From Mobula hypostoma (lineage: Eukaryota): a DNA stretch of 64,000 bases. The position numbers and the translations under genes are program-made. The stretch covers positions 151,032,001 to 151,096,000 of the forward strand of contig NC_086104.1 of assembly GCF_963921235.1 (NCBI RefSeq). The letters run 5' to 3'. Positions within the stretch are counted from its first letter, which is position 1; every line of letters begins with the position of its first letter. Under the pieces are notes generated by a model that saw nothing but the letters and a program-made list of their open reading frames with translations, was not told the DNA's origin and ran no database searches. Shown in pieces: positions 20,160-42,400 of this stretch.

Positions 20160-20800
20160 ACAAAAAAAAACTTGACCAACTCTCCCACCACAGGCCACGG
20201 AATCTCGCGAAACTTGCCTCAGCGAGTTATTATGCAAAGCAAGGCTTTTTTAATGGCACCCGACGCACCCAATCAGAAGCTGCATCCCCTCCAGCTAATG
20301 GGCGGGGTGTATTTTTAACCAATAGCAAGAGGCGGAGATGGGGACGGTTTGGGAAAAAATACTTTCCCCCTCCCCAAGAATCCCAGAACCAGAGTTTATT
20401 ACCGCGTGCTTTTTTTCCCTTTTCAAGAAAGGGAGTGTAAAAAAAAAGTTGTCAAGCGGTTAAAACAAAAACAGGCCTGTTGATTGACATTTTGACAGGC
20501 GGATTGTTATAAGAAACGTCAAAAACGTGTCCCCCTATCAGCGCAGGGACGAGGCGGGCTCTGTGGCCACTGTTTTGATGAGGAGAATATTTTGGGAAGA
20601 AAATTATAAATTGTTTGAAAAGCTTTGCTTAAACGATGTTAAGCTGAAGATTTTCTTTAGTTAAAAGACCGAATACGTACGTGTACATAGAAATAAAACG
20701 TAATAATAACCGTAACTGACGACGGCACAGGGGTTTATTCTGACGTGCTGACGTAAGGACGCTGTGCGCGTGGGGCAGACGTTGAGCTGCGCGCTAAAGG
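20160..20800. promoter_or_regulatory. CpG-enriched divergent promoter between MOB1A and the hnRNP H-like gene
   Basis: TCTCGCGAAA 20203-20212 (9/10 to TCTCGCGAGA), CCAAT at 20269 and 20319, GC box GGGCGGGG 20300-20307, tandem TGACGT CRE-type sites 20741-20756. CpG density is high relative to the flanks. Confidence 0.7.
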
Positions 20801-20936
20801 TAGGGTGTTGTTTTCAGCTTTCCCTCAATTGTCTGCTTCACGCCGACCGTCGGTGGGTTTTTTTTCCTGACGCGAAGCGGTGGAGCGAATATGTTTTTTA
20901 TTCGGACGAGAGGGAGAGAAAGCAGCTGAAGCTAAG
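20800..20936 (+). other. Probable non-coding exon 1 of the hnRNP H-like gene (start uncertain)
   Basis: Lies in the CpG island downstream of the CRE sites; AAG|gtcggg donor at 20936/20937 followed by G-runs. Exon 2 has an acceptor at 22486 upstream of the ATG, so an upstream exon is needed. Confidence 0.45.
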
Positions 20937-21031
20937 GTCGGGCTGAGCGAGTGGTGGGTGATGGGGGCGGGAGGCTGGGGGCGTGGATGTGGCGAGGGCC
21001 CGGACTCCAGGACGCTGCGTTGTGAGGCGCG

Positions 21032-21043
21032 GCCGCCATTTTG
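21032..21043 (+). promoter_or_regulatory. YY1 consensus site GCCGCCATTTTG
   Basis: Exact match to the long YY1 motif just downstream of the presumed TSS. Confidence 0.6.
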
Positions 21044-22519
21044 CGGTGCGCCGCTGTGTAATGGACGGTGGTGGCGCCGCGTCCTCCCCTCACTCGACGG
21101 CTTTTCGACCCGTTACCCCTGTCCAGCCATTCCCCAGGGCGCCAGGTAGAAAAGCGGCACCGTTTGAATACCTGGAGTAGTTATTTAATATTATTTATTT
21201 AAAATTTACATTTGTTTTCTTGTGCACTCTGATCTCTCATTGATCCTGTTATAATTGCTATTGTATAGATTTGCGGAATATGCCCACAGATAAATGAATC
21301 TCAGGGTTGTATATGATGACACTGAAGTACTTTACTGCTTTCCCACTTCTTGAGGCTGTTCTGTTTCGGGAATCATTTTACGTTTCCCCGCAGCGCTTAC
21401 CGTTCTATCGCAACTAAAACTTGATTTCAGTGTTATAGTCCTGCAAGTAATCTGTACTTTGGCCCCTCCATGATATTTACCTCGACTTTGCTAACTGAAT
21501 CTCTTTCCCACTGGAATATCTACAGATCCACTTTTGAATGTATTTAAAACCTGAGACTCGGATTCTGGGGATCGCTACCTGATCGATGACGATCTTTTTT
21601 TCCCCATGTTTGTTGTTCTTTGCAACTGTTTAGCGATTCTAGACTAAGTTAGTTAATTCGACCCTAGTTCTTGTAAATGACTATAGGAACTAACTCTTTT
21701 GGGCGATCTTTCCTTTCTCTCTCCACGAATTTGGTTGCTCTATATATGCAGTGCTATGAGATCTGAGCGATCGTATTAGGACTCCCATTTCATTGCATTA
21801 AAAAGTCTTCCTCATGCATGCAAGTCCTTTTTAAAATAAAACGTATTAAGACACTGCCTGTGCGCGTTAAAATTATGTTTTTGCAGCACAATCTGGAGCT
21901 GATGTAAAGCAGTTTAATCTTGGCCCAAACTTTTTACCTTGGTAAACATTTGCCATCTTAAAATTTTGTGTCATTTGTCAGGCCATGAGGTGTTTATGCA
22001 TTCTTTTAAATTCTGTTAAAGTGGTCATCTTCTTGTTCAGTTTGACAGTTATAATGCCTTTGGTTCTCCAGAGTTTTTATTTGCATTTCAATTGTTTCTA
22101 TTCTATAGATTTTTTAAAGTATACCCACAAGGTAATAAATCTCAGAGCTGTAACTTACGTACTTTGATATATGAAATTCTTCAGTTCTTGACCTTCCCCA
22201 CTCACCTGGCTTCACCTACCATCTTCCAGCTAGCCTCTTCCCCTTCCCCACCACCTTTTTATTCTGGCATCTTCCTCCTTTCTTAGTCCTGAAGAATGCT
22301 TTTGGTCTGATGCTGTCTGACCTGAGTTCCTCCAGTGCTTTGTGTGTGTTGCAATAACATTTATTTTCAACTTTGAATACTTTGTTTTGTTTTTAAAAAC
22401 TATTTGCTTGTAAAGTACATTTAATATCTTGATTTTTAGAAACATTGTGGAGCTGCAGACCTGATAACTTAACTTTTTTTTTCCAGACGATTTTTAATTG
22501 ATCAGAATCGTGCATTCAA

Positions 22520-22598
22520 ATGGAAGAAGATTACATTGTCAGAATTCGTGGACTTCCATGGTCCTGCACTGCAGATGAAGTGTTGCGATTTTTTTCAG
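22520..22598 (+). CDS. hnRNP H-like coding exon 1 ([26 protein letters not shown]), start of qRRM1
   Basis: ttttccag acceptor at 22486, ATG at 22520, TCAG|gttttg donor; RGLPWSC motif. Confidence 0.88.
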
Positions 22599-22845
22599 GT
22601 TTTGTGAATTTATTCTTAATGGTTCGGCACTTGAAATTTTGGAATCTGAAGTTTGCTCGAAAATTTAAATAGAATGAATGTTTAATATATATTTGGACCA
22701 ATACTGGAGGAGGCCTTATGGCCTATCAAACACCTGCTGCTTTGCATTCTCAATAAGTCCATTCTCCCTCTTTATTTCTGTGTAGCCCAACCATTTTCTC
22801 CTGTCTTACAAGTTGATTTTTTTTCCAATCATACTTGCCAGTAAT

Positions 22846-24430
22846 TATAATCGAAATGGTGCTGGAGGACTGGAAAATTGCAAATGCCACTCCACTCTTT
22901 AAAAAGAGAGGGAGGCAGAAGAAAGGAAATTTTAGGTTAGTTAGCTTGACTTTAGTGGTTGGGAAGATGTTGGAGTCTAGTATTAAGGATAAAGTTTTGG
23001 AGTTACTTGGAGGCACAAAGACAGCATCATTTCCTTAGACCTTGCCTGACAAATCTGTTGGAATTCTTTGAGGAAATAACAGGCAGGATAGACAAAGGAG
23101 AGAGTCAGTGTATGTTGATTTCTTGGATTTTCAGAAGGCCTTTGACAAGATGCTGCATGTGAGACTGCTTTACAAGATGAGAGCCCATTGTATTATAGGA
23201 AAGATGGATAGAAGATTGGTTGACTGGCAGGAGGGAAAGGGTGGGAATAAAGGGGGGCATTTTTTTGGGTTGACTGTGAGTGACTAGTGCGGTTCTTCAG
23301 TGATCGCTGTTGGGACTGCTTTTCACATATGTCAATGATAAGTGATTGAATTGATGGCTTTGTGGCAAAGTTTGTGCGTGATACACAGGTGGAGGGGCAA
23401 ATAGTGTTGAGGAAGCTGGGAGTCTTCAGAAGGATTTGGACAATGGGCAAAGTGGCTGATGGAATATAGCATAGGGAAGTATATGGTTGTGCACTTTGGT
23501 AGAACGAACAAAGTCGTAGACTATTTTCTAAACCGAGAAAGTCAAAGGTGCATAAGAACTTGGGAGTTCTTATGCAGGATTCCCTGAAGATAAACTTGCA
23601 GGTTGATTCGATGGTAAGGAAGGCAAATGCAATGTTAGCATTCATTTTGGGAGAAGTAGAATATAAAAGCAAGGATGTAAAACTAGGGCTTCAAAAGGAA
23701 TTGGTTAGAGTGTACTTGGAGTATTGTGAGCAGTTTTGGTCCCATATCTAAGAAAGGGTATGCTGCCATCCAGAGGAGGTTCATGAAAATGATCCTGGAG
23801 ATGAGGAGCACTTGATGGCTCTGAGCCTGTACTTGCTGGCGTTCTATAAGAATTTGGGGGGGAGCCTTATTGAAACCTGTTGAATGTTGAAAAGCCTAGA
23901 CTGAGTGGACATGGAGAGGATGTTTCCTGTAGTGGAGGAGTCTAGGACCTAAAGGCGCAGCCTCTGAATAGAAATACACATCTTAGAACAGTGGTGATGA
24001 GGAATTTCTTTAGCCAGAGGGTAGTGAATCTGTGCAGTTCATTGCCACAGACAACTGGATGCCAAGTCACACTCTCAATGCGCTGGAGGAACTCAGCAGG
24101 TCAGTCAGCATCAGTTGAAAAGATTAGTCGACGTTTCGGGCTGAAACCCTTCGTCAGATTTCGGCCCGAAACGTGTACTAATCTTTTCAACAGATGCTGA
24201 GTTCCTCCAGCGCATTGTGAGTGTTCCTTTGACAACAGCATCTGCAGATTATTTTGTGTTTTGGATGCCAAGTCATTGGGTATATTTAAGGAGGATGTTA
24301 ATAGGTTCTTGATTAGTAAGGGCATCAAAGGTTCTGGAGAGAAGGCAGGAGAATGAGGTTGAACGGAGTATAATGGGCAGACTTGGTGGGCTGAATGGCC
24401 TAATTCTACTCCTATGTTTTGTGGTCTTAT
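22846..24430 (+). mobile_element. CR1-type LINE ORF2 remnant
   Basis: LEDWKIANATPLFKK..KKGNFRLVSLT; CLTNLLEFFEEIT; KANAMLAFI; LEYCEQFWS; RNFFSQRVVNL; multiple frameshifts. Confidence 0.88.
24070..24261. mobile_element. Miniature fold-back Penelope-derived element with 14-bp TSD, nested in a CR1
   Basis: TGGATGCCAAGTCA at 24056-24069 and 24262-24275; inverted arms; hammerhead core on the minus strand at 24126-24157. Confidence 0.82.
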
Positions 24431-24640
24431 TTTTCTCCTTTTTACAACTACCTGCAACCTTTGGTACCTCCAGTATTAGAGGCCAGTAGGCTAGTTACTA
24501 ACCAGTATTTGTGTAGATTCACAGTTCCCATAATGGCCTTTGCTTTTGATTTTTTTTGATTCCGAATGCTATATGATGTTTTGTCTTGTTCCCATGTTGC
24601 TTTTTCCTAAAATCACAGGCCAGTAATTAATTGTTTACAG

Positions 24641-24796
24641 ATTGCAAAATATTAAATGGAACTGCTGGGATACACTTCACTTATTTGAGAGAAGGCCGTC
24701 CAAGTGGAGAAGCTTACATTCAGCTGGAATCCAAGGATGATATAAAATGTGCCCTTGCAAAAGATCGGGAGAGCATGGGGCATAGATACATTGAAG
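24641..24796 (+). CDS. hnRNP H-like coding exon 2 (qRRM1)
   Basis: tttacag|...GAAG|gtaagc; [52 protein letters not shown]. Confidence 0.93.
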
Positions 24797-26121
24797 GTAA
24801 GCTTATTTTAAGTTGTAGGCTTGCCAAGGCCTAAGTTCAAGTCCTTCATTTACTGAATTCCTTGTGCTTAATGAAGTAATGAGTGAAACAATATTTCTGT
24901 TTGACACATCAGTAAATACTTGAGTGTTGTGGGACTATTGTTTATTTCAGTGATCTGACTATCTTCCCATTTTCTAAATTCCATGACTTGCCTTTATCCT
25001 AACTTTCACTCGATCCAGTTCATCCTTCTATACTCGTTGACCTACAGTGGTTTCTGCATGCTTAGTTTGAATCCAAAACTTACTTTAAGATAACTCCTGG
25101 GCCTTGCCCCTCCCTTCTTTACCTTTTCCGGCCCAAGGTGCTGCCAGATGAATAATGTCTCCATTTCTAACCTTGATGACTTTCATTCTGCTGGGATAAT
25201 TGTTTTGGGTGGGGGGGGGGTGCAGTGGAATAATTGTCCATAGGTATCAAGACTAATTTGGACAGTAGACTTGCTTCACCATGTTGCTTAAACCCTATTG
25301 TTCTCTTGTTTCCGGATGTTTGTGTAACTGGCGCCTTGGTGATTGTGGATGAGGTGCTGGCTGTTATAAAAAGGCATCGTACTATTTATCTGCTGTTTAA
25401 ATATGGGGGGATATGTAATGGAATTTAATTAGAAAGGAAAATGATACATGTACTCGCATACATTAGTGACCCAGCTGGAAACCTGACATGTTTCTGTTAA
25501 AACAAATGCAACTGTGGCCTATGAGTAGCTCAGGATTTGGCATAAGTTCTGAATGCTTATTGAATAATTAGTTAATTTGCAATACATAAATTAAATCAAG
25601 AATTGAAAATGGAAATGCCTGTTGCATAGTGGGGAGGAGGGCTTATGAATGATTATACAATCTGTATTTAGCCTTCAGAGAAGCTTGATTTTAGCTAGCC
25701 CGTTATTCAGCTCTGTAGTAAAATATTCAAATGTTTTCATTTAAGCAGCTGGCATTGAAATCACAAATTAAATAAGATTTAATTCAAGTTTAGGTGTACA
25801 TGTCAATAGAATTAACTTTTGCGCTGGTGGTGGGATGAGTAATAAAAGTTGTCTGTAGGTGGAGTGTGACGTTTACTTGGTCCTATTGAACTTGTTTGGC
25901 ACAGATGCAGGAAGGGATTGTTGGTGAAATGGAAAATTTCAAGTATACAGTTTAGTTGTGAGCTGTTCAATATAGATCAATTTTAAACTTGTAAGGATTT
26001 GTTTTCTATGCTAAATGTATTTGTCTGTCATGGGAATGCTTGGATCATTAATTCAGGCATAGTTCTTGTCATAGCGAAGAATAGTTTGTTTAGATTTCAG
26101 TATTTCAATTTGTATTTGCAG

Positions 26122-26265
26122 TCTTTGAGACTAAAGCCACTGAAATGGACTGGGTGCTAAAACATGTTAACCCAAGTCAGACAGAATCAACAAGTGATGG
26201 AACTGTACGCCTTAGAGGCTTACCATTTGGATGCAGCAAAGAGGAAATTTTACAGTTTTTCACAG
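26122..26265 (+). CDS. hnRNP H-like coding exon 3 (linker, start of qRRM2)
   Basis: ttgcag|...ACAG|gtactt; [48 protein letters not shown]. Confidence 0.93.
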
Positions 26266-29122
26266 GTACTTATTGTTTATTTCCTCCAGTATTGGAACGC
26301 CATATGTTTGGACATGGGGTTTAAATGTCATAATGTTAAAGCAGATTTTTTAATGGGAAAGGATTGGGAATGTTCATAAATGGCTACTCATAAGCTGTGC
26401 AATAATTATCAATGTTTGGTATAGATATACAAAGCTTGTTCCGTGTTTTGTCAGTTTGGGGGGGGATGGGATAGTGGAGCATTATAATCTTTACTCCATA
26501 GTGTGGCGCATAATATTGGGCACAAGGGTTTTTATTTGAATAGGATTCCTAAAATAATTTTTAAAGAATTTCTGCTGATGGATTCACAATTTATTGCAGT
26601 GATTTACAAAGAAGACACGTTTTGTCGTCTTGGCAACGTTTAATGCAATTGGCATAAATGTGTGAGCTAAAGAACTAGAAGATTTGGGAAAGCCCACAAG
26701 TTAGCTTAGTTCCAGCAAGAAGTATTGGACCATGTTTCTAAGGCATGCTTGTATTTTGCAGTGGAGTATTAAGTTATTTTTGGAAATATAGGTTAGATTC
26801 GTTGCCAAAATGGTAACTTAGTTTCTTTGACGTAATTGGGGCCAATATCACAAAATTGTAATATTGCCTCCATTTAAAGATATTCTGATTTCTGAAATGT
26901 CAATCCTTGAGTCCAATATTGTGAGCCAATAGTGTATGCATATTAATTGAAGGAATACTTTAGAAAACTATGCCCGATTTATCAATTTTTCAAACAGCAT
27001 TGCTTAAACGTATTTTGCAGGGTAGAATTCTGTACGACGTTTTACCAACTGCATCCAACAAATTCATTCTTGCACCACTTTATTCACCGATAAGCATTGG
27101 TATTTTAGAATTGATACTACAATGCAAGCGATTTTTGGTCATAATTTGTACATGATGCTGTTATTCTAAACTATTCCTTCTCAAATGTTAGTCCAGCTAA
27201 GGTTTGGGTCACTTGGTACAGGCAGTACAGTAGTGCTGAAATTCGAAATCTAAAGAGTTGCACTGCAGGATGGTAGATGCAGTTGTGTGTCTGCTGTCCT
27301 GAGCATTTACAAACCCAGCTTTGCCAGTGTAGGGGAAGTGTCTACTAAATGTTGGGCACTTACTCTGAACAGAGGAAGTGTAAACTGGGATAATGCACTT
27401 CTAGCTGTCTGCTACAGAGTTGCATTGAATGTTCCCTCAACCCTCCAAGCTTGTGCCTAAGTGGGGAAGCTCAAAAGGGATGATAATACAGTTGTTCTCC
27501 CATAGCTTAGAATCTTAGTTTACATCTTATCCTTTTGAAAAGAATGTAACATTTTACTTTGCTGATGTTTCAGTTACTGTCTGTGAAGAATTTTTACGGG
27601 ATGAACAGACTGAAGTAATAACAAAAAGTAGGATTATTTAGACATTTTAGACAACTGGTGGACTACCTAAGTTCTTCCAGGAGTGTTGCAAAACTTTTGT
27701 TCTCTCCTTTCCCCCTCCCCCTCCTGAAAGTGCCAACCATTTTGAGTTAAGTTTCACGTTGGTGGCTCCTTACTCCTGTTGGTTACATTTCAGGTGCAAG
27801 GCAATCAGTAAATATTTTCAACCAGTGGGAAATAGCAAAGCACTACTTGTGTACCATAGAGATAACTGGGTGGTAAGAGTAGGAATTGTGGTAAAGAAGA
27901 GGTGATTTAATGGAGACCAGTAATGAGAAATTCGCTTTCTGGGGCTGGGTGACTCGGCAGGCGATTGATTGCTTCTACAAGCTGCCATGCAGTTATTTTA
28001 AGATGTTGGGTGGTTTAGTTCAGTTAAACATTTTACTGAATTATTTTAATCTTAAATAAATACTAGGTAAATTAGATGAGCAAGTAAATATGGTTGGGGC
28101 AGTATCAAGTCACATGATTGTTGAGCTGGTAGTTGGTCTAATCCTTGCTGTTTCTTCACATTCAGTAACTTGCAGCTGACAGTATAAATGAACACTTGTA
28201 TTTAAAGACCATGCTAAATTTATCTTGACACAGTTTGCTCGGTAAATGCACTCACTATCTGTATGATGCTGATTATATAAAGCAAATGGATCTGGATTGG
28301 GTTTATTATACAGCCCTAAGAAGCAAACCTTGATGCCTTTAACTTTGAAATGATTAAAAAATTGAGTCACTTGGTATGGAATTAATGTGCGATGATTTAA
28401 TTTCCATAGTCTATTCCAGTTGGGTATCATTGAGCTATTGGTGTCATTGTGAGCTAGTTTCAAATCTCTAATACTGGAATTTGATTCATCACAACCAGAT
28501 AAAATTGTCTAGTTATTGATTTTGTTTAATCCAAGATCAACGATGAGCAGGAGTACAGAAACTCCACTTAGGTTTCACTCCGTCTCACATGACCCTGATT
28601 TGGAAATACAATACTATTCGTTCATCGTTTTATTGAAATCCTTGGAACTTCATCCAGCAGCAGAGTAGTCTGCTGCAGTACAAGCTGAATACCATTGCCT
28701 TGGTAGCAGTGTGATGCAAATACTGGACTTGATGTATTCCTTCCTGTTTTTTTTATACACGTTAATCACCTCTTTTATGAACTTTTATCTGTTGTTTAGG
28801 TTACTCAGACATTTAATAATGTAATGTTAAAAGTCAGCTGGAGTATTGCAAGGACGGTGTCTTTGCAGGCATATAAATTAAACCATGTCCCATGTTCTAT
28901 TGGGGTAAGATTAAACATCCACATTCTGTGCATGCCTGTTTTTAATTGATATCCTATATTTATCTTTGCTTTATTTAAACAGCATTATACTGCCTCTTGC
29001 CTCTTTAGTCAATTCTGATATCAGTACTCGCCATTTGATATGCTGTAGTATGTGTATAAGAGTAGGAATGTTTCAATTTTTAATATTGTTCCCCTTGTGG
29101 GGTATTTGTCCTTGGGTTGAAG

Positions 29123-29261
29123 GGTTGGAAATCGTGCCAAATGGGATAACATTGCCGGTGGACTACCAGGGGAGAAGCACGGGGGAAGCCTTCGTGCAGT
29201 TTGCATCAAAGGAGATAGCTGAAAAAGCACTGGGGAAACACAAGGAAAGAATAGGGCACAG
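29123..29261 (+). CDS. hnRNP H-like coding exon 4 (139 nt, qRRM2; homologous to the autoregulated HNRNPH1 cassette exon)
   Basis: ttgggttgaag|GGTTGGAAATC...GCACAG|gtggggatgg; [47 protein letters not shown]. Confidence 0.95.
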
Positions 29262-30152
29262 GTGGGGATGGACGGAAGGGTGGCTCATATGTCTTTAAGC
29301 CCACTTGTTCAGGTTGCAGAATTCATTCATTCTTGAAGAGAAAATAGTCAAACCACCCACATGCCTTTGGAAAACAGTGGGACTCAACTGATTTTTCTGA
29401 ATTGTGTAAAGATATCCTAAACTGTAGGGCCCTCAGAGTTGAAAGTTAATGGTAAATGTTATCTGCCAGAATTTATACTTGTGTATTTTTAATTTTCAAT
29501 ATTAAACTTATATAATTTTGAAAATCCAGAGGGCTTTACAGTTTAGGATTATCATAGATATGAATACTAAAATTTCAATTGTTTAAATTTGATTTGGTTT
29601 TTAAATGATTTTGTTACATTTGGATTAACTAAATTACATAAAATTACATTTTTTGTAATATTTGCAAACCATTATGACATTGCAAAAACTTTTGTTTTCT
29701 CATTTTAGTGCGTGAAACGCACAGCACTGCAGGCTTTAGTCATCATTTAACCTATGGGAAGGTGATGACTAGACAGCTTGCTGATTTGCATTCAATTCAA
29801 CCAGAGAATGCAATGTTTCATTGGATTGAAGTCAGTTTTTGAATTTGTACTTCGAAGCGTCGGTACTAATGCCCAATTGATGAAATTCGTCACATTTCCT
29901 TTTGTGTACTTTGCAACCTTGCACTAAGCTTTGTTTGAATCAAAATGTCTGACTTGGTGCTTAACACAATTTGGGAGTCTCGTCGCATTTGTGTTGCTAG
30001 GCCTGGTTTGTTTGTGGTCAAACAAAATTGGTCACAACATTAACATTCATATTTTTAGAGAGGGAAGTGAAATTTTCATAATGATTTTTTAAATTTGAGT
30101 AGAACTCTGAACAGTTGAGGCTCTTTAGAAACAACACAACAGCCTTTCCTTC

Positions 30153-31158
30153 GTAAACACGAGGAATTCTGCAGATGCCGGAAATTCAACACACATCAAA
30201 GTTGCTGGTGAATGCAGCAGGCCAGGCAGCATCTCTAGGAAGAGGTACAGTCAACGTTTTGGGCTGAGACCCTTCGTTAGGACTAACTGAAGGAAGAGCT
30301 AGTAAGAGATTTGAGAGGGGGAGGGGGAGATCCAAAATGATAGGAAAAGACAGGAGGGGGAGGGATGGAGCCAAGAACTGGACAGGTGATTGGCAAAAGG
30401 AATATGAGAGGATCATGGGACATGAGGCCCAGGGAGAAGGAAAAGGGGGAGGGGGGAAAAAACCCAGAGGATGGGCAAGGGGGTATAATCAGAGGGACAG
30501 AGGGAGAAAAAGGAGAGAGAGAATGTGTGTATATAAATAAATAACGGATGGGGTACGAGGGGGAGGTGGGGCATTAGCGGAAGTTAGAGAAGTCAGTGTT
30601 CATCTTTACAGTAGAGGAGGCTGTGGACAGACATATCAGAATGGTATGTGGAATTAAAATGTGTGGCCACTGGGAGATCCTGCTTTCTTTGGCGGACAGA
30701 GCGTAGGTGTTCACCAAAACGATCTCCCAGTCTGCGTCGGGTCTCGCCAATATATAGAAGGCCACATCGGGAGCACCGGATGCAGTATATCACCCCAGCC
30801 GACTCACAGGTGAAGTGTCGCCTCACCTGGAAGGACTGTCTGGGGCCCTGAATGGTGGTAAGGGAGGGAGGAAGTGTAAGGGCATGTGTAGCACTCGTTC
30901 CGCTTACAGGAATAAGTGTCAGGAGGGAGATCAGTGGGGAGGGATGGGGGGGACGAAAGGACAAGGGAGTCACGTAGGGAGCGATCCCTGCGGAAAGCAG
31001 GAGGGAGGAGGGAAAGATGTGCTTAGTGATGGGATCCCGTTGGAGGTGGCGGAAGTTACGGAGAATAATATGTTGGACTGGTGGGGTGGTAGGTGAGGAC
31101 CAGGGGATTCCTATTCCTAGTGGGGTGACGGGAGGATGGAGTGAGAGCAGATGTGAGA
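30153..31158 (-). mobile_element. 5'-truncated Penelope-like element with 12-bp TSD, in an hnRNP H-like intron
   Basis: GIY-YIG remnant (VIYCIRCSRCGLLYIGET) plus upstream HIILRNFRHLQRDP; AGCCTTTCCTTC at 30141-30152 and 31159-31170; degenerate hammerhead at 30249-30284. Confidence 0.88.
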
Positions 31159-32661
31159 AGCCTTTCCTTCTGCAGTTGTCAGTTTGAGTGCAGTTGATGT
31201 TGCAATACATCTACGGAGGGTAGTGTTAGGACATGGAGCATTTCAACCCATGATGTTATGCTGACCTTTTAACTTACTCAAGATCAATTGTCCTCAGCTT
31301 TTTCTGAATGTCCAGCAGATGACTTGCTCCCAGATTTCAATTTGAAATTGGCTACAATAACCATTGGAGAGTATACTTGCTCTGTTTGGTTTCAAGTGCA
31401 TCTTGTTTATTTTCATGAAATGTCTATCACAAGGGCCATGTAGAACAAAAGTAGGGAAGTGTTGCCAGTGAGCTTTTCTGACCTTGCAGATGCAGTTACC
31501 TTTAAGATAGTGGAAAAGATGGTTCATTTTGGTTGATTCACAAGACAAAGGGTGTTGTCTTAGGAGGAAAACTGTAAACTTGGCCTGTGCACTCACATTT
31601 AGAAGAATGCAAGGTGATCTTGTTATTTCTGGTTGCCTTAGCACAATAGATGTAAAGATAATACCTCAAGGCGGCAATGTAGGGTTTGCTGGAATGGTTT
31701 GGGAGGGGGGGCAGGTGTGGAAGGGCCACTAAACTGACTAATTCTTTCGGAAATGCTTTCCCAACAGTTTATAGATGGACATTTCAAAAACAAGAGTTTG
31801 TTAAACCACAGAACTGAAGATTGTTGGGGTTGTTTAGTAAAGTGGACAATCATCAGAGCAGCCATAATCATATTAAGTGGTGAAGAGTGCTTAATGGCCT
31901 GCACTTGTGTGACTTTCATTAACCTTGAGTGCATTTCTACTTTAGTCTTTAAGAGCACACATGCCTCTTAAATCCACCTCTAATTTTCAATTTAGCTATT
32001 CACTCCCTTGGTTCCAATGTGTTGTAACAAGTCAGACATTTAATCTAATAGATTTATTGTTAAAGGAAATCAGCTATTTTTATGGCTATTGTATTTATTC
32101 AATATAAATATTATCTATGCTAAGACAAAGATTGATTGCTCTGGTGAAAAGTTAATCATGTTTTCACTTTCCATCTAATTAACAAGTCTCTTACTGATTT
32201 TGAATGGTGCAAGACCTCTTATTTCCACTTGAATGTTGTAAATGGTGAGCACCTTTTAAAAATTTCATACTTCTGTTAACTAATGCAAAGTGCCATTAGT
32301 TTATCACCCACTGAATCTGAAAATATAGTAATGCCACAAACTGGGAGTCAAGTTATACTTTTATCTTGAACCATGTTGGCACGACATTCTAGATGGTTTC
32401 TGTAATGAAGAGTGACAAGGACTATCCACTTGAATTGCGGACAAAATGTTTTTTTTCTAATGTTAAGTGCGCACATTGAGAATATTTTGTAGTTATGATT
32501 TATTGTCAATTTAAAAGTGGGCTAGGGCAACGTAGCCAAAAATGAACAATGGGAGTTTTGTGATTCTTCTCACCAGAGAAATCCACAGTCGTGCCGTTAA
32601 CGTAACTCAGTTTTTAAGATGTCATAACCACAAGCTGATAATATTAATTGTGGCTGTTCAG

Positions 32662-32849
32662 GTATATTGAAATCTTCAGAAGCAGTAGAGGGGAGATTCG
32701 AACTTATCAGGACCCTCCAAGAAGGTTTATGGGGCAACGTCCAGGGCCCTATGACAGACCAATGGGTGGAAGAAGTGGCTATGGTGGTCCAGGTCCCATG
32801 AGAGGAGACATGTATGACCGTACACGGCGGGGCTCTGTATATGGTGGTG
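32662..32849 (+). CDS. hnRNP H-like coding exon 5 (end of qRRM2, PY-NLS)
   Basis: gttcag|G TAT ATT GAA...GGTG|gtaagt; [42 protein letters not shown]. Confidence 0.93.
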
Positions 32850-33112
32850 GTAAGTGAGCACAGTGATATTTTTGGTATGTTAGTAGATTTCAAATTAATG
32901 TGTTAATTACCAATCAGCATGAGTTTCATTTTGTGTGAATTTACACCTGTTAAGCTTGTGCCTCTAGAATTCATGTGCTGTTTGTGTCTCGGTAAACAAG
33001 ATGCTGCCTAATTGGGTCTTCACCACTCACAGGTTTTCAGTAATATCTTAAAGGACGTTTAGTTGCACAACTTATTTTTAGGTCAGATTGTAAAGTGTAC
33101 TTTTTATTCTAG

Positions 33113-33223
33113 GTTATGGCAATTTCGAGGACTATGGTTATAATGATGGTTATGCTTATGGCTACGGTTATGGACGTGATGGATTTGGACACAATATGAG
33201 AGGAGTTGGAATGATGGATAGAG
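33113..33223 (+). CDS. hnRNP H-like coding exon 6 (GYR low-complexity region)
   Basis: ttctag|...AGAG|gtatga; GYGNFEDYGYNDGYAYGYGYGRDGFGHNMRGVGMMDR. Confidence 0.88.
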
Positions 33224-33856
33224 GTATGAAACTCAGTTTGGCTTGTTTTGTTTTCAGTATATTGAAGAGGTCATAGTATATATCACGGGATGGGAATAGG
33301 TCTTTAAGCCCACACTAGCCATCCTTTATACTAATCCTACGTTATTCTCCATCTTCAACTACTCCATAACATAAGAGTGGCAATTTACACCTGGCTAATG
33401 AACCCACCAACCGGCTTGTCTTTGCATTGTGAGAGCAAAGCAGTGAATGAGAAAGGAAAAAGGGCACTGGAGGTTAGGATTGCTGGAGCTGGGGGTGATA
33501 CGATGGCAGCAGCTCTACTAGTTGCATCATACTAGATTGCCCCAAAGTGAAACTTGCATTGATTTTTAATTTTGGGCTCTATGTAAAGTTCTTCCAAAGA
33601 ATAAATTAGTTCATTACTCTAAGGGTCTTAAAGAAATTTAGAACAGTATAACACAGTACAGGCCCTAGAGCTGCATGTTCAGTGCATTTGAGGGGTGGGC
33701 ATGCAGCATGAGGGAAATGCTCCTCTCTGGAGACCTGCATGGGTATAATTGATTATTTGATTTGTACTTTTAATTTGTTGCGTTATATGTTAAATTTGTT
33801 TGCTTTACATCCTGGGTTTAGTGTCTAATGTTTCTATTAATGTTGAAAATTTACAG

Positions 33857-33978
33857 GGATGGGTAACCGTGGTTATGGTGGAGCAGGAGATGCCAGCCCA
33901 CTTTATCAGAATGGTGCAGGTCATTACGTACACATGAGAGGATTACCATTTAGAGCTACAGAAGGTGATGTTGCTGAT
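33857..33978 (+). CDS. hnRNP H-like coding exon 7 (start of qRRM3)
   Basis: ttacag|...GAT|gtaagt; [41 protein letters not shown]. Confidence 0.92.
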
Positions 33979-34364
33979 GTAAGTGGAATTTTTGGGATTG
34001 TATTCCTCACTAAATTTAACCTAAAGTTGAAATGATTAGGAAGCGTCTCATTACCTTTGTTATCTGAGTGTTTATTTCCCAATTAGACACACCTATGACT
34101 TTTTTAAACAAAAAGTAGAAGAGAAGCACTAAAACTAAGTTTTCATCTGAAACAACTCAAGCTGAATTTTGGTGGAAGCTCTTGTCATGTCAAGCAGCCA
34201 CAACCCAGAACATGACTGTATTTAGCACTGATAAGTAACTGGTTAGCTCTTAAGTTGAGTTTTTAAGTATTGTATTGTTTTATGCTTGGTTAAGAATGTT
34301 AACTGGCTATACTCTATACTGGCACCAGTTCCTTGAGCACTGGTGATGAGAATGATTTCCTTTA

Positions 34365-35085
34365 ATTTAGAACATAGAAATTTACAGCACATTACAGGCC
34401 CTTCGGCCCACAATGTTGTGCTGACCATGTAAGCTATTCTAGTGACTACCTAGAATTTACCCAGCGCTAGCTCCCTATTTTTCTAAGCTCCATGTACCTA
34501 TCTAAGAGTCTCTTTAAAGACTCTATTGTATCCGCTTCCGCCACCGCTGCTGGCAGTGCATTCCACGCACCCACCACTCTCTTTGTGAAAAACTTACCCC
34601 TGACATTCCCTCGGTACCTATTTCCAAGCACCTTAAACTATGTCCTCATGTTGACCATTTCAGCCCTGGGAAAAAGCCTCTGGCTATCCACACTATAAAC
34701 GCTCCTCATCTTATATGCCTCGATCAGGTCAATTCTCATCCTTTGTCGCTCCAAGGAGAAAAGGCCAAGTACATTCAACCTGTTCTCATAAGGTACGCCC
34801 TCCAGTCCAGGCAAAGTCCTTGTAAATCTCCTCTGCACTCTCTATAGTATCCACATCCTTCCTGTAGTGAGGTGACCAGAACTGAACACAGTACTCCAAG
34901 TGGGGTCTGACCAAGGTCTTAAAGAGCAGGGCTCTTGAGCTCAATCCCACAGTTGATGAATGCCAATACACCGCCTTAACAACACTCAACACTCAACCCA
35001 GCTTTGAGTGTCCTATCGACATGGACCCCAAGATCTCTCAGATCCTCCACACTGCCAAGAGTCTTGCCATTTATATTATATTCTG
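34365..35085 (-). mobile_element. CR1-type LINE 3' fragment
   Basis: LFKTLVRPHLEYCVQFWSPHYRKDV; QRRFTRTLPGLEG; LGLFSLERQRMR. Confidence 0.88.
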
Positions 35086-35141
35086 TCTTGGGTGGGAGTA
35101 ACCATTACTTGTTGACAATTATCATTTCTATTTCCCAATAG

Positions 35142-35277
35142 TTCTTTTCACCGCTGATTCCTGTAAAGATCAACTTTGAATATGGCTCAGATGGGCGCCT
35201 GACTGGAGAAGCTGATGTTGAGTTTGCTACTCATGAAGATGCTGTTGCAGCCATGTCTAAAGACAAAGCACATATGC
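35142..35277 (+). CDS. hnRNP H-like coding exon 8 (qRRM3)
   Basis: caatag|TTC TTT TCA...ATG C|gtgagt; [45 protein letters not shown]. Confidence 0.93.
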
Positions 35278-35489
35278 GTGAGTAATTAGCCTGGTCTGTA
35301 AATGCATATCTGATCAAACATTCTCAAAGGTATATTGTGCTTAAATGTGACCAACATCAATTTGGACATACTATCTTGAGGAGCAGCAACCATTAATCTA
35401 TATAACCTGTCATCTAAGGTTTATTAATGAAAGTTAGACTACTGCATATCTGATTTTGGGTTCTTCGGTTGTAAAATCTGTACCTTGTA

Positions 35490-36233
35490 CAGTCGGCCCT
35501 CCTTATCCGCGGGGGATTGGTTCCGGGACCCCCCGCGGATACCAAAAAATGCGGATGCTCAAGTCCCTTATTTAACTTGTCTCAGTGCGGGTGGGCTTTA
35601 GGACCCGGGGGAGCTCAGAACCCGTGGTCCGCGGCTGCTGCTGAATCCGCAGTGTTTCTGTTCCATTGACGGAAAACAATCACGTTTGAAAATAAAGTGG
35701 AAATAATAAAGCAATTGGAAAGAGGTGAAATGCCATCGGTCATTGGAAAAGCTTTAGGCTACAGTCGGTCAGTGATCGAATCAATTTTAAAGGATAAAGT
35801 GAGAATAATGGAGCATGTGAAAGGTCCTGCCCTGGTGAAAGCTACAGTTATTACTAAGCAACGCAGTGGTTTAATTATTGAAATACATAAGTTTCTTAAG
35901 TGTTTTATATGCATAGAAAGGTAAAATGTATACTATATACTAAGACAAACATTTGACTGACGCTAAATACTGGATGTACCTGTTCCGACTTGCGTACGAA
36001 TCCGACTTAAAGACTGCCTGTACTTTAAACCATCTCTGGATTACTTATAATATCTAATACAATGTAAATACTATGTAAATAGTTGTTAATACTGTATTGT
36101 TTAGGGAATAATGACAAAAAAAAATCTGTACATGCTCAAACAACGAGTGCTGGAGAGAGAACTCCTGGGTTTTCCCTATCTGTGGTTGGTTGAATCCGCT
36201 CATGCGGAACCCGCAGCTAAGGAGGGCCGACTG
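35490..36233 (+). mobile_element. Tigger/pogo-family non-autonomous DNA transposon
   Basis: TIRs CAGTCGGCCCTCCTTA / TAAGGAGGGCCGACTG, TA on both sides; internal CENP-B/psq-like HTH remnant (EIIKQLERGE..VIGKALGYSRS..ILKDK). Confidence 0.88.
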
Positions 36234-36402
36234 TAAATTCAGTCTTAATTTCTATTTTGTGTATTTGGTCCACTGCAAATTTTTTAATACTCTATTGTAA
36301 GATGTTAGTATTCAAATTTGTGCTGATTAATTTTGACCACATTGTTCATACTGAAACTGCTGTGTAAAGAGAAATTGTGCATTATTTATTGATTTTTTTC
36401 AG

Positions 36403-36507
36403 AGCATCGATATATTGAGCTTTTCCTCGACTCCACTGCTAATATGGGAAGTGGCTTTGGCTATGGAGCACATAGAATGGGCGATATGGGTATGGATCAC
36501 TATGGAG
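36403..36507 (+). CDS. hnRNP H-like coding exon 9 (end of qRRM3); alternative in-frame donor possible at 36489
   Basis: tttcag|AG CAT CGA TAT ATT GAG; QHRYIELFLDSTANMGSGFGYGAHRMGDMGMDHYG; donors G|gtatgg (36489) or G|gtgatt (36507). Confidence 0.85.
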
Positions 36508-37908
36508 GTGATTATCAGTTTTGACTTGATTTCTAACTTAATCATTTAACCATTTGGTAAAACGTGAAGGTTTTCAATAACTGTCCATTAGACTGGTGAT
36601 CCTGATAATTAGCACATTTGTAGAATGGATAGAGAAATTGAGTTTGTCTGGAGATCACTGCCAACTTTCTCAAATTGTCAGTTTATTAACATTATTTAGA
36701 AGCAGCCAGTTCTTTTCATCGGATAGTAAACTGGCAATGCTTGCTACACCTGCAGGTTTCAAGCACAGGAACAGGCGGAAAAAATGAAAAGCATTGGAAT
36801 TTGTTGGGCACAGATTTGAATGGGACAATCATTTTACTGGTTTTAACCAAATCTACTTAAATAGCCAAACTATATTTCATTAACGTGGCCAATATAAACA
36901 TGAGTTTCTGCGGATGCTGGAAATCCACACACACAAACACAGACACACAAGGCTGGAGAAGCTCAACAGGTTTGGCAGGCAGTGCCTATAAAAGGGATTA
37001 AACAATGATATTTTGGGCCAAGAACTTTTATTAAATCTTGAAGAATGGCCTCAACCTGAAATGTCGACTATTAAAATGGTATTATTGTCCTCAAGCTTCC
37101 TTTTTAACTTAAATGATTTCTGTCATAATTTTCAAATTAATCCTTTTTCTAATCAAAATCAAATTTTTGAAGTAAAATTATCAATCTGAGTAATTGAAGG
37201 TGGCAATTTTAAGAGGACAAGACAGTAGAAGTTCAGTAATCCAGCATGCTCAGGGCCTTGCTCTGTTGGTAGATTTTCTAGACTTTGATATTACTCTTAT
37301 ATGCTGCTGTTACAGTAGTATAAATTTCCACTGAAACCAATGAGTTTAAAGGGACAATGAGATCCAGGTGCTGAGCCACTTGGAAAATTTGAATGGTGGT
37401 TTTCTTTATCATGTTTGAACATTTTTTTCCATCAGTGGGTGATGTGTAATGGGCTATTGAGTTGTCAATACATTTTAAAGGTTTACTGGTTGTAGAGGTG
37501 TTTGAGAAAGTTAATTTGTCATGTTTAACTTAAACCAGGTTTGAAAAATGCTACAATGACTAGTTTCCTAAAAGGACAGGAAGGAGGGGTCCTGTGTTGT
37601 ATACAACAGCATATGTTAGACCATGCACTGTGGAAAATAAGTCGGTCATGGTGGAGCACACTTGGTGGGCTGAATGGCCTAATTCTGTTCCTGTGTTTTA
37701 TGGTATGCTGAAAGACTTCAGTACAGATGGCTAATGCTTGATATATTTTGCATTTGTTAATTGTACTCACAAATAGAATAATTTTATGCAGGGACATTGC
37801 TGTTTAAATGGCATACTGGTTGTCAAGTTTGTGGCATGCACATCAGACCAGCTTTACTGAAGATAGGATGAGGATAATCAATCATTTTTTCCCCGTTATT
37901 TCTGACAG

Positions 37909-38016
37909 GTAATCAAGGAGGCTATGGGCATAATGATCAGGGTATGGGAAATAGCTACGGCAACATGGGAAATAGTTATGCGGGCTATGGAAATTCTGCA
38001 AATGCACGTGGATATG
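37909..38016 (+). CDS. hnRNP H-like coding exon 10 (GY-rich tail)
   Basis: ctgacag|GT AAT CAA GGA GGC TAT...TAT G|gtaagt; GNQGGYGHNDQGMGNSYGNMGNSYAGYGNSANARGY. Confidence 0.88.
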
Positions 38017-38228
38017 GTAAGTGAAGTTCCTACTTGAAGGCTCCTTTGGGGAGTTACTGGCTGCTAGTTATAATAAAACCTGAAATAGGGGTGAAACAAT
38101 TGATTTCAGAACATTTCATAACCCCGCTACTTTTGCGGGGATTGTGTGAATCAAGCTGAACAAGTATGACAATTATAGACAAGGAAATTGATTTTTGTTT
38201 AAAACAAGATTTGCTGTTTAAATTACAG

Positions 38229-38317
38229 GCTACGGTGCTGTGGCAGGAGGATATTCCAACAATCAGACCATGGGAATGGGTAACATGGACGCAAACATGG
38301 CTGGATGGAGAATGTAA
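38229..38317 (+). CDS. hnRNP H-like last coding exon, ending ...AGWRM*
   Basis: ttacag|GC TAC GGT...TGG AGA ATG TAA; resembles the HNRNPH3 C-terminus (GWRGMY). Confidence 0.85.
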
Positions 38318-39429
38318 ACTGTTAAGTGGTTGGGCCATGAGTCAGAAGCTTCAAGAACCCTAGGACTGCCACATAATGGATGACCAATGCAGCAACACTG
38401 CTGTTTTCTTCCAAGCAGTAATATTTTTACTAATAGAGCTACTTTGCAGTTCTTTTTATTTTTTTACAGGTTTTGGTGTAAAAATCTTGAAATATTGCCC
38501 AATCAACAGGAATATTGGGTAACATAATTTGAAGCATCAGGTATTTGACCTGATGGTGAAAGGGAGAAATTTTTGAAATTTTGACTTGAGTAAATGTGGC
38601 AAATGAAAGTAAACATCTAGTGCTAAGCTTCTTTTGAACTTGTTTTGTTATTTTAAATCCAACTTGGATCATTTAAAAATCAAATGGAGCAAATTGTGTG
38701 ATTGTATGCAATCTTATACTTTGGTACCATTTGATATGTGGTGAGGTTCAGTGGTCTTTTTACATGCAGTCACCAGAAGCTCAACCACTGTAATGTTTAA
38801 TCTGCTCAGTGTTGTTACGATGCTGCAATAATGAGCATTTGGTAAACATGACTTTTTGTTTTGGAAGCTTATTTTTTACCATATTGCCCAGTATTGTTCC
38901 ACGTTCTGTTTGGTTGTATTTTTCATGTGTCATCCTGTTTACTTTTTGTCTCCATTGCCGTCTAGTAATGCAGTCATGGTACTCAGTTGGATTGAGATGG
39001 GGCAGCTCCTGGCCCATTCCAGTGCAGGGGCTTTCATCCAGTTGTGACTTCCTTGAATGCACTAATGATTAAATTGAGCAGGTGTTGGATATGAGCTGTC
39101 ACCCATCCAGTTGTTTCAGTGGATTCTTCAGCATTTAGCATTTGGAATTCAGCAAATATTTTTACCAACAGTTGCTATGTTAATTTTTTTAATGTGTCTG
39201 GTTCACTTGGAATTTTAACCTGATTCATTTTTTGATTGTTAGCAATGTAGTTTTAAAAAAATGAGAAGTGTATATTTGTACCTTTCTACAAGAGGTGCTT
39301 TTTTTGGGTTACTATTGTTTGACAAGTAAGATTCATTGCCTTTGGCACTTCAATGTGCAGTTTCTGAAATGTGCACATGTCAAACATCTGTGAAAGATTA
39401 CTTACTGTACATTTCTAATGGTAAAATAT

Positions 39430-39435
39430 AATAAA
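39430..39435 (+). terminator. Probable polyadenylation signal of the hnRNP H-like gene (3' UTR about 1.1 kb)
   Basis: AATAAA after a U-rich stretch with no recognisable repeats, with upstream TGTA motifs. Confidence 0.6.
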
Positions 39436-42400
39436 GTGTAATTTCAGAACTCTGGCATAGCCAATATCTGTTCATGGTGTGAAAAGGAAAATTGCTCAAG
39501 TGAACTGGTTATGGTTCTTCGCAAAAGTTTGTACAGGGAATCTTCTGCACTTTGGCATGGTGAAACTGGCAGAGCTTGTGTGGTAATGCTATCTGCACAA
39601 ACTTAGTGCTTACTTTGGGGAGGGGGGCTTGCAAACTTTGGAGATTCACTCAAGAAAGTGATTGTGGGCTTGGGGATTGATTTGGCAGTAGTAAATAGAG
39701 GAACCCAAGGGTTTCTTAAGGGCATAATTTTTGAATGGTGACAATGGGTTATTTATCCTCTTGAGCCTGTTCTAGTTACCATTATGACCAGGGCTGTTCT
39801 GAATATATTAAAGCCACAACACTATCACTTTAACTTTGAAATTTTGCTCCATATGTCAACACTTCAAGCTTTACAGCCCGTTTAAATGCTTTTGCTATGG
39901 TGTTTGAGCTTAAACTATTACAAATGTACGTGGTGATGGTTGCTCCTGGAGTACTAGGGGATCAGAATTGTCCTATCGTAAAATTGGATGCCTACTTGGA
40001 GTTTATAAGAATGAGAGGTTATTGAAACCTGTAAGATCCCAAGGAGGTCTAATGTGTAAATGTCTGAAGATCAACCCTTGGTGGGAGAACCATGAAATAG
40101 GGTTTGTGTAGCGACTTTAGAGGCTGGTGAATCTTGAATTCTGAAATCTGGAAGGCTGTTAATTGAAAGATCAATGAATTGAGGGCTGGAGGGATCCAGC
40201 ACAGAAGGAAGAAACGTGGTGGGAAATTCACACGGATAGACGAGGTAGAAACTGCTGTCTCCCTCTTCTGTTTAACTGCATATTCCCAATTGCCAGTGAT
40301 CACTACTAACTTCTTACCAAAAAGAAATTGGGCATGGCAAGCTATGTAGCCAGAGGTGGAGACTGGTAGCGTAGCGGTTCGTATGACACTATCACAGCTC
40401 AAAACTTTGGAGTTCAATTCCAGCACCGGCTGTAGGGAATTGGTACATTCTTCCCGTTGCTATGGGGGTTTCTACTGGTGCTCTGGTTTCCTCCCACAGT
40501 CCAAAGTCATACTGAGGTTAATTGTTCATTGTAAAATGTCCTAGGATTAAGCTAGTTTTAAAATAGTTGCTGGGTAGTGGGGCTTGTTGGGCTGGCAGGG
40601 CCTGCTCCACGCTGTATCTCTAAATTAAATAAGTAAAACTATCTAGCATAGTGGAGAAAGTGGTTGTAGAATTCAGCCATTTCAACATGTAAAGCAGCCA
40701 CCAACAACAGTTTAGATCCCTCACATCACAAAGACCACTACATCTCCAGCATCAGTTTTCCCAGGCAGCCTCTTCACACTGAGCTATGGGCGAATCATTG
40801 CTGGATTTCGTTAGGTTCCTGCCAGAGCAGCACTCAGTGATAGGAATGCTGATTTTGTTAGTCTTGACATGCCTGGGAATCCCATCCTCAGCACATGGCC
40901 AAGGTCCTAGTGTATGAATCAAAAGTGCTAATTGTATTGCAAGTATGAATTCTGCATTATCAAGCCGCCACTAGGTGCTGCACTGTCTAATGGTCTCTTT
41001 CCAGCAACTGACCTTTTGGCTGCTCCTGGTGTTTGCTGTCAGTCCATCTAGTCCCTGAAGCCACGCACCAAGTCAATCATGTCCTTTTACTGCAGCTAAG
41101 AGAAATGTAGTGGAAAATGCCCGATCCTATATCCCTTATTCAATATTCTCAGTGACCTCTCCTCCACAGCCCTCTTTTAAAGATTTATGGTCTGAAGAAT
41201 ATATTTCTCATCTGTTTTGAATGGCTGATGGCCTATTTTGAGACAACCAGTCATCCCACCCAAGGGGAAACCTCATCCCCAGAACCTGCTTTGTCAATCC
41301 TTGGTCACTATTTTATTTATTTGTTGAGATGCAGGAGCCACACCGCCCAGCAAACCTTACCCCCCCCCCCCACACCCCCAATTTAATCCTAGCCTAATCA
41401 TGGGACAACTTACAATGACCAATTAGCTTATCAACCAGTATGAATTTGACTTGAGAGGAAACCCACGAGGTCACAGGGAAAATGTACAAACTCCTTACTG
41501 GCAGTGGTGAGAATTGAACCTGTGTTGCTGGTACTGTAAAGCATTATCCTAACCACTATGCTACCCTGCTGCCCACTTTAGATATTCCTGTAAGTGATCT
41601 CCCTACATATCTCACACTCCAGGAATCAATCTGATGAAACTTGGCTGCATTATTCCCAGTGCAAATATTGCAAAGGGGTACCAGACCTATATCATTTTCC
41701 TGATGCCATTACACCAGGGCTGTATATAATTTTAGCAAGGCAACTCTTGCTAACAAGTACTTAGAACAAAAATGATGTCCAAAACAATAAAAAAACAGAA
41801 AAGACTGGAAAATGGTGCCTGTGATGAAGTATTTCAACAAAGAGAGCCTGGAATCTTGGCTTTGCACCTGTTGTAACTGCATACATGTACTTGTGCATTT
41901 GCCAACAAATTTGACTTTAACTTTGGAGCATCAGAAACTGAGGCATGACCATGTATAGCTATTCCTTTCCATAGATATTGTCTGACCTGCTAAGGTCCTC
42001 CAGAATTTCATGTGTGCGTTACTCTGGAGTTCCAGCATTTGCAGAGTCTACGGTAGAAAACTACAGTACAAACAGGCCTGTTCTGTTGCAGACTGAGAAA
42101 GCATATTACATGGTCTCCACCTGAAACGTCAACAGCTGGAACTGGTTATAAACTTGAGAGGGAAACCAGAGGTCCATGATCCAGCCCTCATCGGAGGACC
42201 AGAGATGGCGAGGCTCAGCAACTTCAAATTTCTGGGTGTTAGCTTTTCAGAGGACCTGTCCTGGACCCAGCATTTAAGTGCCTCTACTTCCTTAGGAGAT
42301 GCGGAGATTTGGCATGACATCTAAAACTGACAAATTTGTGTGCATGAGAGGGGGGGAGGAAATGTGTATGTGGGTGTGAGTGCGAGAGAGGTAGAGATGG

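Follow-up and report, generated by a model that had tools for sequence, protein, structure and literature searches.

A hnRNP H-family gene between MOB1A and MTHFD2 in cartilaginous fishes: a probably ancient paralogue, apparently lost in bony vertebrates

The genome of the ray Mobula hypostoma carries a gene of the heterogeneous nuclear ribonucleoprotein (hnRNP) H family between MOB1A on the minus strand and MTHFD2 on the plus strand. The stretch analyzed here comprises 64,000 nucleotides (nt) of contig NC_086104.1 (positions 151,032,001 to 151,096,000 of the forward strand; hereafter the window). The textbook hnRNP H family (H1, H2, H3, F and GRSF1) is defined from mammals, and the locus raises the question of whether it holds one of these members in an unfamiliar place, a recent copy of one of them, or a member in its own right. 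We use HX as a working name for the orthology group of the hnRNP H-family gene found at 22520-38317. With a probability of roughly 0.7, HX is a functional, distinct and ancient paralogue of the hnRNP H family that pre-dates the split between cartilaginous and bony fishes, arose most simply in the two rounds of vertebrate genome duplication (2R), and was apparently lost in bony vertebrates.

Integrity, distribution and gene neighbourhood of HX

Reading of the plus strand from 22.0 to 39.0 kb gave 11 coding exons, separated by introns that are all of the GT-AG type and have compatible phases. The coding sequence of 1377 nt starts with the ATG at 22520, ends with a TAA at 38317 and encodes 458 amino acids (aa) with zero internal stops. 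Since its translation is 100% identical (458/458 residues) to the RefSeq protein 'heterogeneous nuclear ribonucleoprotein H3-like [Mobula hypostoma]', our exon model equals an independent annotation. The uninterrupted 11-exon gene described in an earlier, sequence-only reading of the window was thereby confirmed, as were its two neighbours by Pfam and PDB matches. HX had already been predicted automatically by NCBI, and we found no paper describing HX or the ohnologue and duplication history of the hnRNP H family.

The protein has the features of the hnRNP H/F family, namely three quasi-RNA recognition motifs (qRRMs), their signature loops, and Gly/Tyr-rich regions with the motif RPGPYDRP. Pfam RRM_1 was detected in three stretches in a scan of an HX orthologue with 98% identity. 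The qRRM signature loops, which are defined from hnRNP F structures as RGLP[WFY], GEA.V.F and HRY[IV]E.F, read RGLPW, GEAYIQL and HRYIEVF; RGLPF, GEAFVQF and HRYIEIF; and RGLPF, GEADVEF and HRYIELF in the HX translation. The Gly/Tyr-rich linker after qRRM2 opens with QRPGPYDRP, a motif of the PY type with a predicted role in nuclear import, and GY-rich stretches are encoded by exons 5-6 and by exons 9-11, which form the tail. The PDB matches were qRRM1-2 of hnRNP H (6DHS, E 2.4e-95) and qRRM3 of hnRNP F (2HGN, E 3.6e-39), both well above GRSF1. We infer that HX is a nuclear regulator of splicing or RNA processing, in which three qRRMs would bind G-tracts and would be joined to the Gly/Tyr-rich linker and the GY-rich tail.

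The distribution of HX was studied by homology searches in 5.8 billion protein clusters, seeded with exon 5 (which matched mostly fragments of open reading frames) and then with full-length matches, with the best 120 matches listed; the C-terminal half was also searched by itself in the same clusters. Among the matches listed, HX orthologues were found only in cartilaginous fishes, that is in rays, skate, sharks and chimaera. Full-length scores fell from 755-1055 bits for nine chondrichthyan clusters to at most 604 bits, and scores of the C-terminal half from 449-700 bits for chondrichthyans to at most 341 bits; below the gap there were canonical H3 and then H1 proteins only. By BLASTP, HX is 98% identical to its orthologue in the red stingray (Hemitrygon akajei), 90% in sawfish, 89% in little skate, 87% in electric ray, 86% in whale shark and 79-82% in cloudy catshark, sawshark and elephant fish, and the zebra shark protein falls in the whale-shark HX cluster. 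The automatic names inside this group differ ('H3-like', 'H-like' and 'H2-like') and mask one orthology group that deserves a name of its own.

A FastTree phylogeny of 195 fetched full-length proteins placed no non-chondrichthyan sequence in the HX clade. For gar, bowfin, sturgeon, bichir/reedfish, lungfish and amphibians, H1 and/or H3 were matched and nothing HX-like was seen among the annotated proteins listed, genome searches not being part of this comparison. HX thus appears to have been lost in bony vertebrates as a whole and not in mammals alone. The sequence-only reading had proposed a copy of the 2p13 segment that was kept in the ray and lost in mammals; retention of an ancient paralogue stands, and the loss seems to be wider, extending to all bony vertebrates in the protein database. 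The absence of an hnRNP gene from the human MOB1A-MTHFD2 interval, also claimed in that reading, agrees with a 100-kb interval of the pig, which holds SLC4A5, MTHFD2 and MOB1A only.

Gene order provides the stronger line of evidence, and it is independent of trees. In the elephant fish, MOB1 (-), HX (+) and a THF_DHG_CYH gene (+) lie within 30 kb, and both little skate and cloudy catshark carry a MOB1 gene of 216 aa on the opposite strand just upstream of HX. Because the elephant fish has the whole trio, the arrangement of MOB1, HX and MTHFD2 dates at least to the chondrichthyan ancestor. In the sea lamprey (Petromyzon marinus CM110123.1), an hnRNP H/F gene (+) is likewise head-to-head with a 216-aa MOB1 gene (-). 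Cattle have the gene order RUFY3, GRSF1, MOB1B, DCK, and a published zebrafish gene table lists rufy3 (+), grsf1 (-) and mob1ba (+) consecutively (PMC9210284); from the zebrafish strands and the cattle order it follows that GRSF1 is head-to-head with MOB1B and tail-to-tail with RUFY3. Since the pair is seen at HX, at GRSF1/MOB1B and at the lamprey gene, a divergent MOB1/hnRNP-H pair is ancestral to vertebrates, with HX-MOB1A and GRSF1-MOB1B as two copies that survive.

Purifying selection and the ultraconserved exon 4

The ratio of nonsynonymous to synonymous changes (dN/dS) of HX was 0.105 and 0.101 in codon comparisons with skate and elephant fish, respectively, exon 8 being excluded, and values of about 0.10 indicate purifying selection. 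All nucleotide-level comparisons with skate, elephant fish and lamprey omit exon 8 or positions 35208-35245. Exon 4 is identical to the skate exon at 139/139 nt and to the elephant fish exon at 138/139 nt; none of its 30 synonymous sites is changed with respect to either species, and the proportion of changed synonymous sites (pS) in the other exons is 0.36-0.57. Conservation extends into both flanking introns, the whole block being 88% identical to elephant fish over 481 nt with a near-invariant core in the three-way alignment. The exon 4 region is also the sole part of the HX locus that can be aligned with the DNA of the lamprey gene (83% over 156 nt). Relative to the gene as a whole, which has 12 G-runs per kb, their density is two to three times higher in this region, at 36 per kb in exon 4 and 25 per kb in the block.

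As the length of exon 4 is not a multiple of three, its skipping leads to a stop at codon 173, upstream of six exon junctions. According to the published model for human HNRNPH1, the protein attaches to poly-G motifs within and next to an exon; when that exon is skipped, the frame is lost and the mRNA goes to nonsense-mediated decay (NMD) (doi 10.1101/686956). This analogy suggests that HX exon 4 may be under a similar NMD-coupled auto- and cross-regulation, and the exon with its flanks looks like a very old splicing/NMD switch of dosage. In such a loop, skipping of exon 4 would be promoted by H-family proteins bound to the G-runs of the exon and its flanks, the resulting frame shift would turn the transcript into an NMD target, and HX dosage would be set through this ultraconserved exon.

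Sequencing runs suggest, though they do not prove, that HX is transcribed. In four very small Mobula runs (89-170 million letters, from four samples, their kind guessed as RNA), a fraction of 0.84-0.90 of the words from the final two exons and the 3' untranslated region (UTR) was present, and comparable small runs of the same study, two of which are among these four, contained 0.41-0.50 of the words of an intron-rich 5.8-kb stretch. Transcription is suggested because runs that small could not cover a given vertebrate locus as shotgun DNA.

Origin of HX and competing explanations

Maximum-likelihood (ML) trees were calculated with IQ-TREE (LG+C20 with posterior mean site frequencies, PMSF) from 54-60 proteins, comprising HX, H3 and H1 of cartilaginous and bony vertebrates and one lamprey protein; GRSF1, hnRNP F/H2 proper and invertebrate homologues were outside these trees. 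HX entered as a database protein identical to our translation, and support is given as ultrafast bootstrap / Shimodaira-Hasegawa-like approximate likelihood ratio (SH-aLRT). The HX clade received 100/99-100 and the H1 clade 100/100, and the H3 clade, which unites chondrichthyan and osteichthyan proteins, excluded HX at 98/92 to 98/95, so that HX lies outside both clades in which the sequence-only reading had advised checking for it. By BLAST, HX is more similar to chondrichthyan H3 (65-69%) than to H1-like proteins (about 61%). The best tree nevertheless pairs HX with H1 (83/52), and a pairing of HX with H3 is not rejected (p 0.28). The 2p13/10q pairing of HX with H3 proposed before accordingly draws on raw similarity, is not the arrangement of the best tree, and is neither supported nor excluded. 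On the whole, the trees point weakly to a duplication of HX and H3 older than the split between cartilaginous and bony fishes.

Two further candidates were considered and rejected in the course of this analysis. The elephant fish 'hnRNP H2' (UniProt V9KND, Callorhinchus milii) is not a further paralogue but a chimera, with residues 1 to about 140 from elephant-fish H1 and the remainder from H3; it misplaces in trees, and its C-terminal part alone was used. HX is also not the source of hnRNP F, because a degenerate hnRNP F-like protein nests inside amniote H1. Apart from these, an H3 model of Acipenser sinensis ('UNVERIFIED_CONTAM') shows an internal duplication of the end of qRRM2 and the linker, which is probably an artefact of assembly or annotation.

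The automatic name 'H3-like' and the H3-like sequence motifs might suggest that HX is simply the H3 or H1 orthologue of Mobula moved elsewhere. This explanation is refuted, to a degree that leaves it next to no credit, by the other family members of the same genomes. In M. hypostoma as well as M. birostris, a canonical H3 (XP_062927557.1 and isoforms) exists apart from HX, its gene being tail-to-tail with a RUN+FYVE gene of 685 aa. A further gene of both species, named 'H1, like', is in turn tail-to-tail with a RUN/FYVE gene of 690-706 aa; these neighbours match the pattern of HNRNPH3-RUFY2 and HNRNPH1-RUFY1. H3 occurs alongside HX also in whale shark, cloudy catshark and elephant fish. Since Mobula has separate RUN/FYVE-linked H3 and H1 genes and H3 and HX coexist in other chondrichthyans, HX is not a relocated H3 or H1 and not a recent duplicate, and MOB1-linked orthologues in skate, catshark and chimaera likewise exclude a recent lineage-specific copy. 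Together with the consecutive rufy3, grsf1 and mob1ba of zebrafish and the lamprey hnRNP H/F-MOB1 pair, the two Mobula genes bear out the earlier placement of the family in paralogous regions. Unlike H1, H3 and GRSF1, HX is not followed by a RUN/FYVE (RUFY-type) gene, either in 38318-46000 of the window or in the gap between HX and MTHFD2 of the elephant fish. The shared head-to-head partner family could instead indicate that HX is the chondrichthyan orthologue of GRSF1, the MOB1-linked member of bony vertebrates. We regard this as very improbable: the downstream neighbour is MTHFD2 and not MTHFD2L (55.6 vs 35.6 bits), the MOB1 exon is slightly nearer to MOB1A, qRRM1 of HX scores 154 bits with hnRNP H/F structures vs 94 with GRSF1 structures and qRRM3 137-138 vs 107, and HX carries the GY-rich regions of H1 and H3.

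A more serious competitor, although in our view still an unlikely one, is a copy of H3 specific to chondrichthyans, which would have inserted next to MOB1A in their stem lineage and then have been pushed out of the H3 clade by fast divergence. The closeness of HX to chondrichthyan H3 in BLAST, the confinement of its orthologues to chondrichthyans among the matches listed and its long stem branch (about 0.21-0.23) speak for such an origin, and a forced clade of HX with chondrichthyan H3 is rejected marginally by the approximately unbiased (AU) test (p 0.04-0.05). On the other hand, cartilaginous and bony H3 form a group without HX at 98/95, zero strict signature sites unite HX with chondrichthyan H3 alone, and evolution inside the HX clade proceeds at ordinary rates (dN/dS 0.10). 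The duplicate would moreover need to have landed head-to-head with MOB1A, in the arrangement of GRSF1/MOB1B and of the lamprey gene with its MOB1; for a copy of H3 to reach exactly this divergent position by chance would be a remarkable coincidence. About equally improbable is that HX is ancient but does not derive from 2R, either because an older or small-scale event duplicated the MOB1-hnRNP H segment or because H1 and H3 were copied from HX as the unduplicated ancestral locus. The trees leave the order of HX, H1, H3 and lamprey unsettled, and the MOB1-linked lamprey gene sometimes joins HX: in one run the branch that unites H3 with H1, with HX and lamprey together on the opposite side, has 91/85, and in another run the support is 68/10. 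Against it, the four multi-exon members map to four segments of a known paralogy group. We take the chromosome assignments to be a 2p13-type segment for HX, 4q13 for GRSF1, 5q35 for H1 and 10q21 for H3. These four related segments also carry MOB1A/B, MTHFD2/2L, SLC4A5/4 and RUFY1-3, and their simplest reading would be 2R.

Several points weigh against an ancient paralogue of 2R age that was lost in bony vertebrates. Rejection by the AU test of an H3 duplication specific to chondrichthyans is marginal (p 0.047 and 0.038, with log-likelihood differences of 13.9-14.2), and strict signature sites are too sparse to decide. The lamprey sequence forms a long branch, and from run to run HX, H1, H3 and lamprey change their order. 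As the trees are without GRSF1 and invertebrate outgroups, the 2R date is indirect and comes from synteny and a lower bound on age. Absence of HX from bony vertebrates was read from annotated proteins, not from genome searches, and the homology of HX exon 4 to the 'exon 4' of HNRNPH1 was deduced from reading-frame logic, not from an alignment.

An ancient paralogue remains the explanation that we prefer. Within the MOB1A-MTHFD2 segment (human 2p13-type), HX would sit where the family ancestrally stood, next to MOB1; it would have originated before the cartilaginous and bony fishes separated, most simply in 2R, and purifying selection would have preserved it in Chondrichthyes, whereas bony vertebrates apparently lost it. 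A bolder version, which we put forward only tentatively, is that HX directly continues the ancestral MOB1-linked locus, is orthologous to the lamprey gene and completes a four-member 2R set (HX, GRSF1, H1 and H3), that the exon 4 switch is more than 450 million years old, shared among paralogues and part of a cross-regulated network, and that bony vertebrates dropped one member.

Features of the locus and comparison with known systems

The features annotated in the window are given in Table 1. In exon 9 of HX there are two in-frame GT donors, 36489 and 36507, which lie 18 nt apart and would give proteins of 452 or 458 aa; the RefSeq model uses the distal donor. Conservation with skate (74% over 38215-39609, which covers the last exon and 3' UTR) and with elephant fish (89% over 39402-39454) accompanies the end of the gene, and a probable end of the 3' UTR follows the AATAAA at 39430, within the block shared with elephant fish.

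Table 1. Coordinates of HX, its flanking genes and associated elements in the window
Feature	Position	Strand	Basis
MOB1A coding exon 2	2730-2882	-	Pfam Mob1_phocein E 3.7e-07
MOB1A coding start (ATG AGC TTC CTT TT, then GTAAGT)	20007-20020	-	pattern search; ATG at 20020
CpG island between divergent MOB1A and HX start codons	~20400-21200		CpG o/e 0.97-2.0, GC up to 0.58
HX coding exon 1 (ATG; qRRM1 begins)	22520-22598	+	exon reading
HX coding exon 2 (qRRM1)	24641-24796	+	exon reading
HX coding exon 3 (linker, qRRM2 begins)	26122-26265	+	exon reading
Conserved G-run-rich block (~160 nt intron, exon 4, ~176 nt intron)	28962-29437 (476 nt)	+	alignments
HX coding exon 4 (139 nt, qRRM2; ultraconserved; candidate NMD-coupled regulated exon)	29123-29261	+	exon reading, nucleotide alignments
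HX coding exon 5 (qRRM2 end, RPGPYDRP motif, GYR region)	32662-32849	+	exon reading
HX coding exon 6 (Gly/Tyr-rich)	33113-33223	+	exon reading
HX coding exon 7 (qRRM3 begins)	33857-33978	+	exon reading
HX coding exon 8 (qRRM3)	35142-35277	+	exon reading
HX coding exon 9 (alternative in-frame donor at 36489)	36403-36507	+	exon reading
HX coding exon 10 (GY-rich tail)	37909-38016	+	exon reading
HX coding exon 11 and TAA stop	38229-38317	+	exon reading
Probable HX 3' UTR, AATAAA at 39430	38318-39455	+	conservation with skate and elephant fish
MTHFD2 exon	56067-56255	+	Pfam THF_DHG_CYH E 8.8e-14
MTHFD2 exon	58630-58749	+	Pfam THF_DHG_CYH; PDB human MTHFD2 55.6 bits vs MTHFD2L 35.6 bits

The start of MOB1A is head-to-head with HX at a distance of 2.5 kb from the HX ATG, and the MOB1 exon 2 scores 101 bits with MOB1A and 98.4 bits with MOB1B in PDB, which is marginally closer to MOB1A. 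Within the CpG island a 35-nt block (21017-21051) is 94% conserved with skate, and the island probably represents a shared bidirectional promoter of MOB1A and HX together with a non-coding first exon of HX. ORFs with a GIY-YIG endonuclease domain were found at 30596-31210 (-) in intron 4 of HX and at 13780-14265 (-) in intron 1 of MOB1A (Pfam E 1e-4 and 5e-5), with an inverted (+) partner around 13.8-14.3 kb; they are probably remnants of Penelope-like retroelements. A run of 143 N lies at 42701-42843 between HX and MTHFD2, and in the elephant fish MTHFD2 begins 4.6 kb past HX with no gene called in the gap. An Rfam scan of the window gave zero matches at gathering scores.

A distinct HX would mean that jawed vertebrates began with one additional multi-exon member of the hnRNP H family, and that the family was originally placed head-to-head with MOB1, three of the four multi-exon members also having a RUFY-type gene in tail-to-tail orientation. 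HX would then be a clean case of a duplicate retained solely in cartilaginous fishes.

Among known systems, HNRNPH3 (2H9, RUFY2-linked) is the most similar to HX. It shows the top identity, shares the motifs GYGGAGDAS and HMRGLPFRA, is likewise multi-exon and, in non-mammals, has the same architecture of three qRRMs with GY-rich regions. It differs in forming a separate clade (98/95) and in its tail-to-tail position with a RUN+FYVE gene, whereas HX lies between MOB1A and MTHFD2, and genomes carry both. GRSF1, located between RUFY3 and MOB1B, corresponds to HX by position in the sister segment, since it too is head-to-head with a MOB1 gene, but its qRRMs are much more divergent; GRSF1 is mitochondrial and is without a GY-rich tail. 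The lamprey hnRNP H/F gene (XP_032806035.1 and isoforms) resembles HX in its head-to-head 216-aa MOB1 neighbour and its alignable exon 4 region, and differs in its long branch and in a tree position relative to HX that varies between runs.

HNRNPH1 (RUFY1-linked) has about 61% identity with HX and shares the qRRM signatures and RPGPYDRP; the 139-nt exon of HX likewise has poly-G motifs, and its skipping breaks the frame. HNRNPH1 belongs to a separate clade (100/100), and in HX such regulation is predicted from sequence. The candidate for an ultraconserved regulated exon is the most interesting by-product of this work, and HX may serve as a natural outgroup for the ancestral functions of the H family, including dosage control through such an exon, a matter of medical interest in the case of HNRNPH1 and HNRNPH2.

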